DNA from: Macrostomum lignano
Lineage: Eukaryota
Length of the DNA stretch: 64,000 bases
Direction: 5' to 3'
NCBI GenBank assembly: GCA_002269645.1
Contig: NIVC01003146.1
Coordinates: 1-64,000, forward strand
Shown: one piece after another, positions 12,301 through 18,300 of the stretch
Layout: the number at the start of each line of letters is the position of its first letter
Numbering within the stretch: position 1 is the stretch's first letter
The notes under the pieces: model-generated
Database searches by the model: none
What the model saw: the letters and a program-made list of their open reading frames with translations, nothing else
What the model was told of the DNA's origin: nothing
Translations under genes and position numbers: made by a program

Positions 12301-15300
12301 GCAGACGTCCACCCAGCTGGCAAAGACAGACTCGACGTCGTGCGTCGGCAGCTTGAAGTACGGGGTGAGCCAGCCGACCCACGAGCAGGCGGGGTCCTGG
12401 CCGGGCAGCAGGCGCACCGAGTAGTGGTACTCGTCGATGTACTCCGCCACCGCGTTCTCGCGCACCTGCCGGGGTTCGTTTATTTAGCATTAAAATGGAT
12501 AAATAAGTTATAGAATAGTTTATTAGTAGAATTTTAACGCACTACTCTTAGTAGCTGAAATGCAGTTGCTGAAGAAAATTTGAAAAATGATTTGTAAAAA
12601 GAAAACATTTCTGAATTTTTTGTTTCAACAAAAATTCACGACAGACAGACAGACCGACAGACAGACAGACAGACAGACAGACCGACAGACAGACAGACAG
12701 ACAGACAGACAGACAGACAGACCGACAGACAGACAGACAGACAGACAGACAGACAGACAGACAGACAGACAGACAGACAGACAGACAGACAGACAGACAG
12801 ACAGACAGACAGACAGACAGACAGACAGACAGACAGACAGACAGACAGACAGACAGACAGACAGACAGACAGACAGACAGACAGACAGACAGACAGACAG
12901 ACAGACAGACAGACAGACAGACAGACAGACAGACAGACAGACAGACAGACAGACAGACAGACAGACAGACAGACAGACAGACAGACAGACAGACAGACAG
13001 ACAGACAGACAGACAGACAGACAGACAGACAGACAGACAGACAGACAGACAGACAGACAGACAGACAGACAGACAGACAGACAGACAGACAGACAGACAG
13101 ACAGACAGACAGACAGACAGACAGACAGACAGACAGACAGACAGACAGACAGACAGACAGACAGACAGACAGACAGACAGACAGACAGACAGACAGACAG
13201 ACAGACAGACAGACAGACAGAAACACACAGGGATAGAAGACAGAGAGGCAGGCAGGCAGGCAGGCAGGCAGGCAGGCAGGATGCGTCATGCGGGTACCTC
13301 AATTAAGGGCCACCCCCCCCCCCAGATGGATGCCTTGCATGCGAGGCCACGCATTGCATTAATTGGATTCCGCTGACAATAAAAAGCAGAAATTGCAGAA
13401 ACTTGGAAGCAATAAATATTATTTAATGCGATATTGTTTTTCACAGTAGCAACTGCTGCGGGCCCGGCTTCTCATCAATAATTAATCAGCCAAAAGTTGG
13501 GGATGAGCGATGGGGGAACCACTTCGGACCGGTTCTGACAGGGGGGGTTGTGGGGAATCCAGTTTGAGCAGCTGACGTGGCGGGAGGGGGTTGGCAACAA
13601 TGGGCGAGGCCGGCCAGCAGTGCCTGGGGCTCGCGGGCTGGCCCGTCCTATCCGAACTGGCCCGGGTGACACCGGTTCTGAACAGGGACTATTTGAACAG
13701 CATTTACCTGGATTAGAAAGCCAAACAGCTATTTTCATTCGAGAGTCTGGAGGCTTCAGCTGAGAGAGTCGGTGACTCCGCAAACTGCACTCACTGCTGG
13801 CCCAGATCGCCAAGAGAAAATTTCCAGAGCTAGCCTTTCTCTTGTGAAGCCATTGTGTGGGAACTTTGCTGGGCCAGTTTCCCAGTCCAGGTCTCCAGTC
13901 CAGGGATTTGCTAACAGGCCGTGGGAGCGCCCGGGAGCGAGCGCTGAGCAGCCCCACCCCGACCCACCCCCTCCCCGCTCTCCTGGCCTGCTCTATAAGA
14001 TGAGGCGAAGCGGGAGGCTGAACCGGCCCAGCCCGCCCGCAAGTCAGCAAGCCCTCCAAATTCTCTCAAAGTTTCCGCAAAGCAACTCCGCAGCTAGCCA
14101 TGAGCCAGGACCGCAAGCAGCAGCTCACCAAGCTGTTTGAGCAGATTGACAAGGACAAGAGCGGGTATCTGTCGCTGGTAAGTGTCTTTATTAGTTGCTA
14201 GGCTGAATACCTGCCTACTCTGCAATACCTGACTCACTCAATTCCCTGCAGAGCGAGCTGAAGGAGGGCTGCGCTAAGATCGGCATCACCGAGAGCGAAG
14301 CCCAGGCTGTTCTCAGCAAGATGGACGTCAATCAGGATGGCAAAGTCAGCGTCTCGGGTACGGTGGACCTCAGCTGAAGGATCGGGAGGCACCCAGCTGA
14401 AGGATCGGGAGGCACCCAGCTGAAGGATCGAGAGGGGGCTCCCAGCTGAAGGATCGGGAGGGGGTTCCCAGCTGAAGGATCGGGAGGGGGCTCCCAGCTG
14501 AAGGATCGGGAGGGGGTTCCCAGCTGAAGGATCGGGAGGCACCCAGCTGAAGGATCGGGAGGGGGCTCCCAGCTGAAGGATCGGGAGGGGGTTCCCAGCT
14601 GAAGGATCGGGAGGGGGCTCCCAGCTGAAGGATCGGGAGGGGGCTCCCAGCTGAAGGATCGGGAGGGGGTTCCCAGCTGAAGGATCGGGAGGGGGCTCCC
14701 AGCTGAAGGATCGGGAGGGGGTTCCCAGCTGAAGGATCGGGAGGGGGCTCCCAGCTGAAGGATCGGGAGGGGGTTCCCAGCTGAAGGATCGGGAGGGGCT
14801 CCCAGCTGAAGGATCGGGAGGGGGTTCCCAGCTGAAGGATCGGGAGGGGGCTCCCAGCTGAAGGATCGGGAGGGGGTTCCCAGCTGAAGGATCGGGAGGG
14901 GGCTCCCAGCTGAAGGATCGGGAGGGGCACCCAGCTGAAGGATCGGGGGCTCCCAGCTGAAGGATCGGGAGGGGGCACCCAGCTGAAGGATCGGGGGCTC
15001 CCAGCTGAAGGATCGGGAGGCACCCAGCTGAAGGATCGGGAGGCACCCAGCTGAAGGATCGGGAGGCACCCAGCTGAAGGATCGGGAGGGGGCTCCCAGC
15101 TGAAGGATCGGGAGGCACCCAGCTGAAGGATCGAGAGGGGGCTCCCAGCTGAAGGATCGGGAGGGGGCTCCCAGCTGAAGGATCGGGAGGGGGTTCCCAG
15201 CTGAAGGATCGGGAGGGGGTTCCCAGCTGAAGGATCGGGAGGGGGTTCCCAGCTGAAGGATCGGGAGGGGTTCCCAGCTGAAGGATCGGGAGGGGGCTCC

Positions 15301-18300
15301 CAGCTGAAGGATCGGGAGGGGGTTCCCAGCTGAAGGATCGGGAGGGGGCTCCCAGCTGAAGGATCGGGAGGGGTTCCCAGCTGAAGGATCGGGAGGGGGC
15401 TCCCAGCTGAAGGATCGGGAGGGGGCTCCCAGCTGAAGGATCGGGAGGGGGTTCCCAGCTGAAGGATCGGGAGGGGGCTCCCAGCTGAAGGATCGGGAGG
15501 GGTTCCCAGCTGAAGGATCGGGAGGGGGCTCCCAGCTGAAGGATCGGGAGGGGGTTCCCAGCTGAAGGATCGGGAGGGGGCTCCCAGCTGAAGGATCGGG
15601 AGGGGCACCCAGCTGAAGGATCGGGGGCTCCCAGCTGAAGGATCGGGAGGGGGCACCCAGCTGAAGGATCGGGGCTCCCAGCTGAAGGATCGGGAGGCAC
15701 CCAGCTGAAGGATCGGGAGGCACCCAGCTGAAGGATCGGGAGGCACCCAGCTGAAGGATCGGGAGGGGGCTCCCAGCTGAAGGATCGGGAGGCACCCAGC
15801 TGAAGGATCGGGGGCACCCAGCTGAAGGATCGGGGGCACCCAGCTGAAGGATCGGGAGGCACCCAGCTGAAGGATCGGGGGCACCCAGCTGAAGGATCGG
15901 GGGCACCCAGCTGAAGGATCGGGAGGCACCCAGCTGAAGGATCGGGGGGGGGGGCTCCCAGCTGAAGGATCGGGGGCTCCTAGCTGAAGGATCGGGGGCT
16001 CCCAGCTGACACTCCAACTAACGCTTCAGTTTTTTTGCTTTCAGAGTTCCTGGCCTACATGAAGTAGCGGGACTGTGACAGGCTGCCGTGATGTTTGAAA
16101 TACTGAATGACCCATATTCAACTTGCCCATATCTCTGTCCATACCGCACTAGTAAGACTATAATATCTTTTAGGAACTCCTGTTCAATTTTAAGTCAAGT
16201 AATTATCTATATCTAACCCATATATTTATTAACTAATTATTAATACCAACGAACAGTTGCCAGTTACGCAGTGAGAAAACCTAAGACTGATTAGACGTGA
16301 ACTTCTGACATTTTAAAAATAAATAAAATTCTTCTCAAAACTTTTTTCAGCTTTAAAATAGTTCGTGAACTTTATTGAGACTTTATTTCTTTTGTTGACT
16401 AATGTGACGATTCAAAAAATGTGACAAATTGTGAATGTGACAGTTTGGGAATGTGACAGTTTGGGAATGTGACAGTTTGGGAATGTGACAGTTTGGGAAT
16501 GTGACAGTTTGGGAATGTGACAGTTTGAGAATGTGACAGTTTGGGAGTGTGACAGTTTGGGAATGTTACAGTTTGGAAGTGTGACAGTTTGGGAATGTGA
16601 CAGTTTGGGAATGTGACAGTTTGGGAATGTTACAGTTTGGAAGTGTGACAGTTTTGGAATGTGACAGTTTGGGAATGTTACAGTTTGGGAATGTGACAGT
16701 TTGGGAATGTGACAGTTTGGGAATGTGACAGTTTTGGAATGTGACAGTATGGGAACGTAACAGTTTGGGAATGTGACAGTTTGGGAATGTGACAGTTTTG
16801 GAATGTGAAAACTTGGGAATGTGACAGTTTTGGAATGTGAAAACTTGGGAATGTGACAGTATGGGAACGTAACAGTTTGGGAACGTGACAGTTTTGGAAT
16901 GCGCCGCCCAGCCTCTCACCTGCATCTCGTACTGCAGGTGGTCGGTGTCTTCGCCGCCGAATTTGCCGAACAGGCCGGCGTCGGCGCTGGCGTCGGGCGT
17001 CAGGATGGCCGTCACGGCGCTCTGCGACACGTCGTCGGCGCCGCCGTGGCTTTTCTGCTTCTTGAAGAAGTTGGCGATCTTCGTCTTTTTCTTTGCTCCG
17101 CCGGTGGCCGCGGCGGCGGCCGCGGTGGTCGATGGCAGGTGCTGGCCGTCGGCGGCGCCCTTCGGCACCATCAGGGAGGTCGGGCCGCCACCCTCGCCGC
17201 CGCCGCGCTGCTGGAGGCGCGGGTCCAGCTTCTTGCGGAAGTTGTCAACCTCGGCGCGGCGCTGGGCGAGGCTGCGGCTGGTGAACTGCTGGTGGCAGCG
17301 GACCGGCAGGCTGAGCCGCACCACCTCCAGGTGGTCCTCCTGAGCGCTGGGCACGTACTTGGTGCTGATGCTGATCAGTGGGGTGCCGCCGGCCGAGCGC
17401 TGGGCCAGGATGTGCGAGTGCGAGCTCTCCTCCGAGATGGTCTCGAAGCTCGTCTCCAGGCGGTCGTACCACATCGGCAGCGCCGAGTGCATGTTGCTGG
17501 GGAGGAGGGATTTCAGTCGGTTCTCATGACTCACGGCTGTTCTCATGACTCACGTCTGTTCTCATGACTCACGTCTGTTCTCATGACTCATGACTCACGT
17601 CTGTTCCTATGACTCACGTCTGTTCTCATGACTCACGTCTGTTCCTATGACTCACGTATGTTCTCATGACTCATGACTCACGTCTGTTCCTATGACTCAC
17701 GTCTGTTCTCATGATTCACGTCTGTTCTCATGACTCAAGTCTGTTCTCATGACTCACGTCTGTTCTCATGATTCACGTCTGTTCTCATGACTCACGTCTG
17801 TTCTCATGACTCACGTCTGTTCCTATGACTAATGTCTGTTCTCCTGACTAACGTCGTTTCTGATAGCTCATGACTCATGTTGGTTGCTATGACTTGACTA
17901 ATGATGATGCTTATGACTCATCATGATTCTCATCTGTAACTCATAATTTATTTGACCCATTATCATTCCTAAGCCAGAAAGTCCCAGAGCAATATCCCAG
18001 CCCCTTTCGCTCACACGCAGAACGGCTCGAACCCCTCCTGCAGGCCGCAGCAGGTGAAGTACTTGAAGCTCTTGACGTCCTGGCCGAGGTTCAGCTTGGC
18101 TGACTGCCCGACGCCCAGGGAGAAGGCGGGCACGTAGCCGGTCTTGGCGTTCACCTGGATGCCCTTGAAGGCGATCTCCTGGCCCACGCTGTCCATCATC
18201 AGCTCGCCGTTCAGGGAGAAGTCTGAGCGAGTTCGGGGCGGCGGTGATCATTGAGAGCTCACGAGAGATCATTGAGAACCTTGAGAAGTCCATGAGAAAC

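Follow-up and report, generated by a model that had tools for sequence, protein, structure and literature searches.

A small EF-hand gene nested antisense within an intron of the RyR gene in Macrostomum lignano

Organisation and annotation of the locus

The window surveyed here is a stretch of 64,000 nucleotides of the Macrostomum lignano genome (assembly Mlig_3_7, contig NIVC01003146.1, positions 1-64000). Its minus strand carries the gene of a calcium-release channel, the ryanodine receptor (RyR), recognised by the Pfam domains MIR, RIH, SPRY, RyR and Jsol, and on the plus strand, within one intron of this gene, lies a short gene of three exons. Rfam and tRNA matches were absent from the whole window. 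The features of the host intron and of the nested gene are given below by position.

12091 to 12465, minus strand: RyR exon 3′ of the host intron, SPRY segment (Pfam SPRY, E = 2.7e-9)
12466 to 16919, minus strand: host RyR intron of 4454 nt in phase 0, 5′ boundary CAG/GTGAGA, 3′ boundary CAG/
13994 to 13999, plus strand: TATA-like box TATAAG, 100 nt 5′ of the ATG, putative core promoter
14092 to 14094, plus strand: unpaired CAG acceptor, 6 nt 5′ of the ATG, in the hexamer CCGCAG
14100 to 14177, plus strand: exon 1, coding, M1-L26, with helix 1 and EF-hand loop 1 through position 10
14178 to 14251, plus strand: intron 1, 74 nt, phase 0, GTAAGT..CAG
14252 to 14357, plus strand: exon 2, S27-S61 and base 1 of the codon for E62; it completes loop 1 and continues with helices 2-3 and loop 2 through position 11
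14358 to 16044, plus strand: intron 2, 1687 nt, phase 1, GTACGG..TTTCAG
14371 to 15996, plus strand: G-rich minisatellite of a 26-nt unit, ~65 copies, filling intron 2 (TRF)
16045 to 16067, plus strand: exon 3, coding, which completes the codon for E62 with its last two bases and adds FLAYMK, with TAG at 16065-16067
16068 to 16345, plus strand: predicted AT-rich 3′UTR (GC 0.32), its 3′ end approximate
16920 to 17496, minus strand: RyR exon 5′ of the host intron, after SPRY2, at the start of the divergent SPRY3 part (tblastn with Lingula RyR)

The three coding exons were read from the sequence and join into a product of 68 aa. Both introns have GT..AG ends, which are valid on the plus strand only, and reading through intron 1 leads to a stop after 7 codons. 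Intron 2 interrupts the codon for the loop-12 glutamate of EF-hand 2, and vertebrate calmodulin genes presumably have a matching last intron, likewise of phase 1 and placed in the codon for Glu at position 12 of their final EF-hand loop. Two overlapping AATAAA signals stand at 16318-16327 in the predicted 3′UTR. A complete plus-strand EF-hand gene of three exons and 68 aa, with TATA-like box and AATAAA, had been described in the earlier note, and its exons and junctions were recovered exactly. The donor of intron 2 is weaker than the M. lignano consensus GT[G/A]AG (PMC8629364). Upstream of the ATG, the unpaired CAG is a candidate spliced-leader trans-splice site, a possible but speculative assignment, and its hexamer is a partial match to the M. 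lignano spliced-leader acceptor motif [T/C]TNCAG (PMC8629364).

From the TATA box to the poly(A) signal the nested unit covers 13994-16327 and lies wholly within the RyR intron, and the number of RyR exons that it overlaps is zero. It is confined to a single host intron without exon overlap and is thus a nested intronic gene. On its antisense location in this intron, which had also been claimed before, the splice sites, Pfam and the GenBank annotation agree; in GenBank the nested gene and RyR are annotated as overlapping. Tandem repeats make up ~62% of the host intron: (GACA)160 occupies 12640-13279 and an array of a 16-mer 16418-16901, and the 26-mer array accounts for the rest. The 26-nt unit is found again, inverted, at 31216-31778. 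Capture of the nested gene by a transposon was considered and rejected, as there are no terminal direct or inverted repeats in either flank.

A public model of the nested gene is already known. It is BOX15_Mlig023125g1/g2 in GenBank, under the name “hypothetical protein”, and the 68-aa product is identical to PAA53041.1/PAA86180.1, so that the gene cannot be regarded as unannotated, as had been thought; UniProt names the protein “EF-hand domain-containing protein”. A third annotated copy, BOX15_Mlig023125g3, is a K56N variant. The annotation pipeline of M. lignano is purely transcript-based (StringTie/TACO/TBONE/TransDecoder; PMC5730564), and since the annotation was built from RNA-seq assemblies, a spliced plus-strand transcript of the nested gene very probably exists; the public model thus speaks against the objection that there might be none. 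The nested gene and RyR were annotated from the same whole-animal RNA-seq, and hence both are expressed in the animal. In the full text and supplementary tables (differential-expression tables included) of the M. lignano papers searched, Mlig023125 was not found.

Transcription of the two genes is convergent, with full overlap in the pre-mRNA, and interference is reported to drive the expression divergence of nested pairs in the available portions of PMC5174743 and PMC3192792. These points would suit a pair without any link at the protein level, in which convergent transcription is mutually antagonistic and the guest serves chiefly to regulate RyR, or RyR to regulate the guest. However, the guest touches no RyR exon and therefore the mature mRNAs cannot pair, and the shared whole-animal annotation has both genes expressed; we regard such an interference pair as unlikely.

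The encoded EF-hand protein

With the Pfam family EF-hand_7 (PF13499), whose threshold is 30 bits, the spliced product scores 57.3 (E = 2e-15), and EF-hand_1 (PF00036) matches it twice. Its EF-hand loops, residues 17-28 and 51-62, are both canonical loops of 12 residues, judged by D in the first place, D/N/S in the third and fifth, G in the sixth, a hydrophobic residue in the eighth and E in the twelfth, and every canonical ligand position is kept in both Ca2+ loops. The GC3 of the nested gene is 0.85, against 0.94 for the RyR exon and a GC of 0.27-0.54 in the flanking non-coding DNA. Taken together, the Pfam score, the canonical loops and the coding-like GC3 argue that the ORF is not a product of chance.

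A single-sequence AlphaFold2 model (pLDDT 85) places helices at residues 3-16, 26-35, 40-47 and 60-66 and strands at 23-25 and 57-59, and the predicted fold is thus a pair of helix-loop-helix units whose loops are linked by a short antiparallel beta bridge. Foldseek returned CDPK calmodulin-like domains, calmodulin lobes and centrin (TM 0.7-0.8), and by sequence the nearest solved structures are the C-lobes of CDPK and calmodulin, with E from 9e-18 for CDPK SK5, the best match, to ~7e-12 for calmodulin. The product is an acidic protein of 7.6 kDa (pI 5.3) without signal peptide. By sequence it resembles one generic lobe of calmodulin/CDPK type, at ~30-35% identity.

With the calmodulin C-lobe and the CDPK calmodulin-like domain (PDB 1s6i, 2aao, 1cll-type) the protein shares the same canonical pair of 12-residue loops and the four-helix domain. 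Calmodulin, however, has four EF-hands in two lobes, ~149 aa and very high conservation, whereas the nested product is one lobe of 68 aa; this length, the single lobe and the level of identity rule out calmodulin sensu stricto, and without a second lobe the classical wrap-around binding of targets is impossible. CDPK carries a kinase, while the 68-aa protein has neither kinase nor second lobe. S100A1 is also small and Ca2+-binding with two EF-hands, but S100 proteins have an N-terminal pseudo-EF-hand of 14 residues where the first loop here is a canonical 12-mer; membership in S100 was rejected because this pseudo-EF-hand is missing and the family is not among the Pfam matches. Sorcin is a penta-EF-hand protein, an architecture which the nested product does not have.

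A likeness to the trematode 8-kDa proteins of the Fasciola hepatica FH8 type had been proposed as well. It stands as far as size (~68-69 aa), the two EF-hands and a flatworm origin are concerned; specific kinship finds no evidence, as the approximate identity of 27% over 63 residues is lower than that to calmodulin/CDPK lobes. FH8 is an antigen which a parasite secretes; M. lignano is free-living and its protein, as noted, has no signal peptide.

A word-indexed homologue search with the 68-aa product found M. lignano clusters only, without a close paralogue or orthologue. An origin by young duplication, the usual one for nested genes, is therefore not obvious here. HMMER against 1.8 billion representatives gave 12,772 matches, of which the best 150 are long multi-EF-hand proteins; in this ranking the summed scores of multi-EF-hand proteins swamp any small orthologue. 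In the same search the protein represents its own 50% cluster.

Genomic copies and comparison with other species

The RyR copies hosting the nested gene are three out of three genomic copies, with 98-99.8% identity among them. The nested ORF is intact in each, exon 1 has the same sequence in all three, and the one coding change is conservative and falls on a loop residue that is not a ligand. The spans of the nested gene are 1968, 2095 and 1949 nt, with intron 2 varying in length. As far as its exons were checked, RyR itself is intact in one copy. The nesting in all three copies reflects recent polyploidy and not conservation: as recent duplicates the copies provide no evolutionary evidence and say nothing on selection, and at 98.3-99.8% identity their single coding difference is too few for a selection test.

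The gene might also be a transcribed ORF without function, that is, a decaying or spurious model whose EF-hand signature is a relic. Its absence from the differential-expression supplements searched, the donor of intron 2, which is off the species consensus, and the orthologue that went undetected in the homologue searches would be in keeping with this, but the ligand positions are all kept in both loops, the ORF is intact in every copy, the codon bias is strongly coding-like and the single-sequence fold prediction is confident. We hold a functionless ORF to be most improbable.

Conservation of the nesting was examined at the RyR loci of five species, and the homologous RyR interval was located in four of the five. 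It contains no nested gene in Echinococcus, Cichlidogyrus, Lingula and Patella (four lophotrochozoans, two of them flatworms), and in the partly covered RyR locus of Schistocephalus a nested EF-hand gene was not seen. No antisense gene calls were present at the five loci, and tblastn found no EF-hand-like sequence in them (best E = 0.3), while the positive control, the M. lignano nested gene (exon 2), gave E = 3e-26. A six-frame regex for complete EF-hand loops was invalid here, as introns split both real loops and the window itself scored zero. Conservation of the host-guest nesting is thus not observed in the distant relatives checked, all from outside Macrostomum, and the synteny in other flatworms that the earlier note had proposed to check is absent in Echinococcus and Cichlidogyrus.

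These results bear on the suggestion that the guest is a dedicated modulator of its host, a single-lobe protein which would bind RyR (e.g. at the calmodulin-binding region, encoded outside the window) and tune Ca2+ release, with the nesting keeping linkage or co-regulation. Calmodulin and S100A1 are known to bind RyR, the EF-hand pair is most like the calmodulin/CDPK C-lobes, and the arrangement is kept in every genomic copy. Against this, the copies are recent and silent on selection, the nesting is absent from the homologous interval of the other species checked, and the likeness to known regulators is at the level of the fold, with neither the S100 pseudo-EF-hand nor the penta-EF architecture. 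A literature search on RyR and nested genes gave nothing relevant, and no calmodulin, S100A1 or sorcin gene is known inside an RyR gene. We consider a dedicated modulator very unlikely. The functional pairing of RyR and regulator that had been proposed is therefore unsupported, the nesting being absent from the homologous intervals checked and the EF-hand similarity generic, and we infer no RyR-specific role for the 68-aa protein; the earlier interpretation was right in structure, and its functional part is without support.

Interpretation of the nesting

The reading we favour, and consider probable, is that of an ordinary independent nested gene which encodes a small cytosolic Ca2+ buffer or sensor, with its location in RyR a lineage-specific accident. 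The gene would be transcribed independently, probably from its own TATA-type promoter and with its own poly(A) signals. The product would amount to one lobe of calmodulin type, made up of a lone EF-hand pair with its two canonical Ca2+ sites, and would most likely act as a Ca2+ buffer or sensor in the cytosol. Many two-EF-hand proteins are dimers, and this one may possibly be dimeric too. Guest genes accumulate in long introns, and the RyR gene is of great length, so the nesting is likely accidental; the position would most likely be a matter of genome organisation in this lineage and not evidence of a dedicated partnership.

The literature on nested genes agrees with this as far as the available portions of the sources go. 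Nested genes are described there as common and mostly unrelated to their hosts (PMC5174743, PMC3786989), as the commonest protein-coding overlap, with insertion into long introns as their usual origin (PMC5174743), and intronic genes as ~6% of Drosophila genes (PMC3786989). Nested antisense intronic genes include Drosophila 2mit in timeless2 and, in the intron of an unrelated host, the TipE cluster, which encodes auxiliary subunits of sodium channels (PMC3786989, PMC3240667, PMC5174743). The M. lignano gene is likewise short and complete and lies in a long host intron, on the strand opposite to the host. Unlike these known nested genes, guest and host here share a Ca2+ theme, which is unusual and of unproven significance; the TipE cluster is conserved across taxa, whereas for the M. 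lignano nesting no conservation was found in the taxa checked.

As it stands, the value of the finding is modest: the public gene model is confirmed, each of the three RyR copies, whether homeologous or allelic, contains the guest, and the nesting is not common to the more distant flatworms or other lophotrochozoans checked. A predicted Ca2+-binding protein inside the gene of a Ca2+-release channel is a real thematic coincidence, and it speaks against the ordinary-gene reading, as does the missing sign of a young duplication. A Macrostomum-lineage “half-calmodulin” binding its host RyR, or convergent transcription gating RyR expression cell type by cell type, is a highly improbable alternative, under which an intron of the channel gene would supply it with an accessory or switch that senses Ca2+. 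A functional pairing would be a rare example of a regulator encoded inside the very ion-channel gene on which it acts, and, because M. lignano has transgenesis and RNAi, a tractable system for host-guest transcriptional interplay and for minimal single-lobe Ca2+ sensors.

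Gene structure and host intron

The minus strand of the window carries MIR, RIH, SPRY, RyR-repeat and junctional-solenoid domains on its ORFs and thus encodes a ryanodine receptor (RyR), whose exon order, taken from tblastn with a Lingula RyR, starts at about 28.6 kb and descends to 12.1 kb. The guest, an EF-hand gene, lies wholly within RyR intron 12466-16919 on the opposite strand, as the earlier note had proposed, and overlaps none of the RyR exons. Splicing of the sequence (13900-16500 read) at junctions 14177/14252 and 14357/16045 bears out the three-exon gene of that note, with a coding sequence of 207 nt and a product of 68 aa; its TATA-like box and AATAAA are both present.

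Features of the guest gene and its host intron (a slash marks the splice site)
16920-17496 (-), RyR exon flanking the host intron
16919 to 12466 (-), RyR host intron, 4454 nt; 5' ...ATGCAG/gtgaga, 3' ...ccggcag/GTGCGC
12091-12465 (-), RyR exon flanking the host intron
13994-13999, TATAAG, from sequence reading
14100-14177 (+), guest exon 1, ending ...TCGCTG/gtaagt
14252-14357 (+), guest exon 2, preceded by ccctgcag/ and ending ...TCTCGG/gtacgg
14371-15996 (+), 26-nt G-rich minisatellite, about 65 copies, taking up almost all of guest intron 2
16045-16067 (+), guest exon 3, preceded by ctttcag/, with the TAG stop at its end
16318-16327, two overlapping AATAAA signals, from sequence reading

If left unspliced, intron 1 gives a stop after seven codons and intron 2 after six. 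Intron 1 is in phase 0 and separates loop positions 10 and 11 in EF-hand 1, and intron 2 is in phase 1 and interrupts the loop-12 glutamate codon of EF-hand 2 (G/AG), therefore a complete second Ca2+ site requires removal of the 1.7-kb intron. The last coding exon, after the 14357/16045 junction, is 23 nt. In vertebrate calmodulin genes the last intron has the same place and phase and the last coding exon is 29 nt; this match, if it holds, would point to descent of the guest from a calmodulin-family gene.

An unpaired CAG acceptor was seen 6 nt upstream of the guest ATG, within 14092-14099. The spliced leader of M. lignano has an ATG at its end (PMC8629364), and it may be speculated that trans-splicing at this CAG would bring the leader ATG in frame and extend the N-terminus by three residues (MLA).

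Coding signal, transcripts and relatives of the protein

The guest signal exceeds chance and the gene is real. The spliced product matches Pfam EF-hand_7 with 57.3 bits (E = 2e-15; cut-off 30) and EF-hand_1 twice, and every canonical position is kept in both loops. GC3 is 0.85 in the guest and 0.94 in the large RyR exon, and the non-coding DNA adjoining the guest has an overall GC of 0.27-0.54. Set beside these figures, a transcribed ORF without function is a very unlikely reading.

The gene was also public beforehand, with its model in GenBank: the product is 100% identical to BOX15_Mlig023125g1/g2 (PAA53041.1 and PAA86180.1; 'EF-hand domain-containing protein' in UniProt) and 99% identical to BOX15_Mlig023125g3. 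No discussion of its position within RyR was found in the literature searched. Window positions 4100-26067 agree at every base with the same positions of NIVC01003146.1, so the window corresponds to 1-64000 of that contig (assembly GCA_002269645.1). On NIVC01003146.1 and NIVC01000292.1 both the 68-aa gene and the overlapping minus-strand RyR are annotated (RyR products of 2874 and 4427 aa). The Mlig_3_7 annotation was made from transcripts only, by StringTie/TACO on RNA-seq and a de novo transcriptome, with TBONE boundaries and TransDecoder ORFs (PMC5730564), so spliced plus-strand RNA should underlie the guest model; the earlier note had staked the gene on a spliced transcript, and the annotated model rests on transcript assemblies. 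Transcripts at least 95% identical carry a common name prefix (PMC5730564), so one transcript cluster has three genomic copies, g1, g2 and g3.

The protein (7.6 kDa, pI 5.3) has no N-terminal hydrophobic signal in its 68 residues. Its single-sequence AlphaFold2 model is confident (mean pLDDT 85), with four helices and two short bridging strands, and in Foldseek this predicted model groups with calmodulin lobes, centrins and the calmodulin-like domains of CDPKs (TM 0.7-0.8). The best PDB sequence matches were plant CDPK calmodulin-like domains (E = 9e-18) and the calmodulin C-lobe (about 7e-12). Identity with calmodulin was rejected because the guest has one lobe and calmodulin two, and identity with S100 because both loops are canonical 12-mers. 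Identity to Fasciola FH8, named in the earlier note, is 27% over 63 residues, a figure that serves as a lead only, and any other EF-hand pair is as close. No close paralogue or orthologue was found by word-indexed protein search, and an exhaustive search of representative proteins was dominated by multi-EF-hand proteins. The guest protein belongs to the EF-hand superfamily and is uncharacterised.

Genomic copies, other species and the meaning of the nesting

The third copy, on NIVC01000874.1, is collinear with the window across the RyR exons and the guest, with RyR exons intact where checked. Around the guest the three copies are 98.3-99.8% identical, with a single amino-acid difference among their products (K56N, at a non-liganding loop position); the gene spans 1968, 2095 and 1949 nt, and the minisatellite copy number differs. 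M. lignano is a hidden polyploid of recent origin whose genome contains large duplicated blocks (PMC5730564; PMC10733133), and therefore the three nested copies represent one arrangement lately duplicated, not independent conservation. On NIVC01000874.1 the 68-aa gene is annotated and no RyR model is listed around it; the missing model is probably a gap in the annotation of these near-identical copies.

The RyR loci of three neodermatan flatworms, Echinococcus granulosus (L002), Cichlidogyrus casuarinus (L003) and Schistocephalus solidus (L004), one brachiopod, Lingula anatina (L007), and one mollusc, Patella vulgata (L008), were compared. In L002, L003, L007 and L008 the counterpart of the host intron could be placed, and it measures 1.65 to 10.7 kb. 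None of the five loci has an antisense gene call, and tblastn of the 68-aa protein on both strands gave a best E of 0.3 in them (positive control, the guest in the window, 3e-26); therefore the nesting is not an ancient RyR feature. The synteny in other flatworms to which the earlier note had looked was not found in the E. granulosus and C. casuarinus intervals, nor in the partly covered S. solidus locus. That note's dedicated RyR modulator is a very doubtful reading, and the Ca2+ theme common to host and guest is a curiosity which nothing found raises above coincidence.

The guest overlaps intronic RNA only, so mRNA antisense pairing with RyR is not possible and nucleic-acid interaction is limited to polymerase collision or pre-mRNA pairing; a transcriptional-interference switch between the two genes is unlikely. 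We consider it probable that this is an autonomous nested gene, predicted to encode a small cytosolic protein that buffers or senses Ca2+ at two sites, and that its location within RyR is incidental. Few genes are as long as RyR, and many of its introns are long and expanded by repeats. Nested genes are described in PMC5174743 as the most frequent protein-coding overlap, typically arising by insertion into long introns and tending to diverge in expression from the host, and PMC3786989 puts intronic genes at about 6% of Drosophila genes. The guest in RyR is a new example of this common arrangement.

Repeats and neighbouring genes

Tandem repeat makes up about 62% of the 4454-nt host intron. This load is usual for the window, where nearly all introns hold a long, distinct minisatellite or tetranucleotide array (the minisatellites have periods of 14-45 nt and reach 3.1 kb, as at 19582-22708; (GACA)160 lies at 12640-13279); simple and tandem repeats are 15% of the M. 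lignano genome (PMC5730564). Many repeats are open in several frames and give long spurious ORFs. The 26-nt unit of guest intron 2 (CAGCTGAAGGATCGGGAGG...) matches 70 times in the window, where 0 matches are expected, and may be a dispersed family; it recurs inverted about 15 kb away at 31216-31778 (-), upstream of the RyR 5' exons, and this copy together with 14371-15996 (+) brackets most of the RyR 5' half. RyR exon 12091-12465 has a GT donor with a 14-nt minisatellite, AGGATCTGGGATCT, beginning a few bases beyond it (9825-12084; 99% matches, about 162 copies), so that 2.2 kb of near-perfect repeat directly follows the splice donor.

The minus-strand ORFs of 36161-43239, with an ANF_receptor (Venus-flytrap) ligand-binding region at 42481-43239 and a split tyrosine-kinase domain at 38647-39537 and 36161-36904, together resemble a gene of the Venus kinase receptor type. 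A laminin gene occupies 52031-64000 (+), with Laminin_N at 52031-52708 and then several laminin-type EGF exons to the window end. GC falls sharply to 0.33-0.36 at 48001-52000 (0.5-0.65 elsewhere), and the extreme GC skew of -0.66 at 44001-46000 is due to a C-rich 22-mer array.
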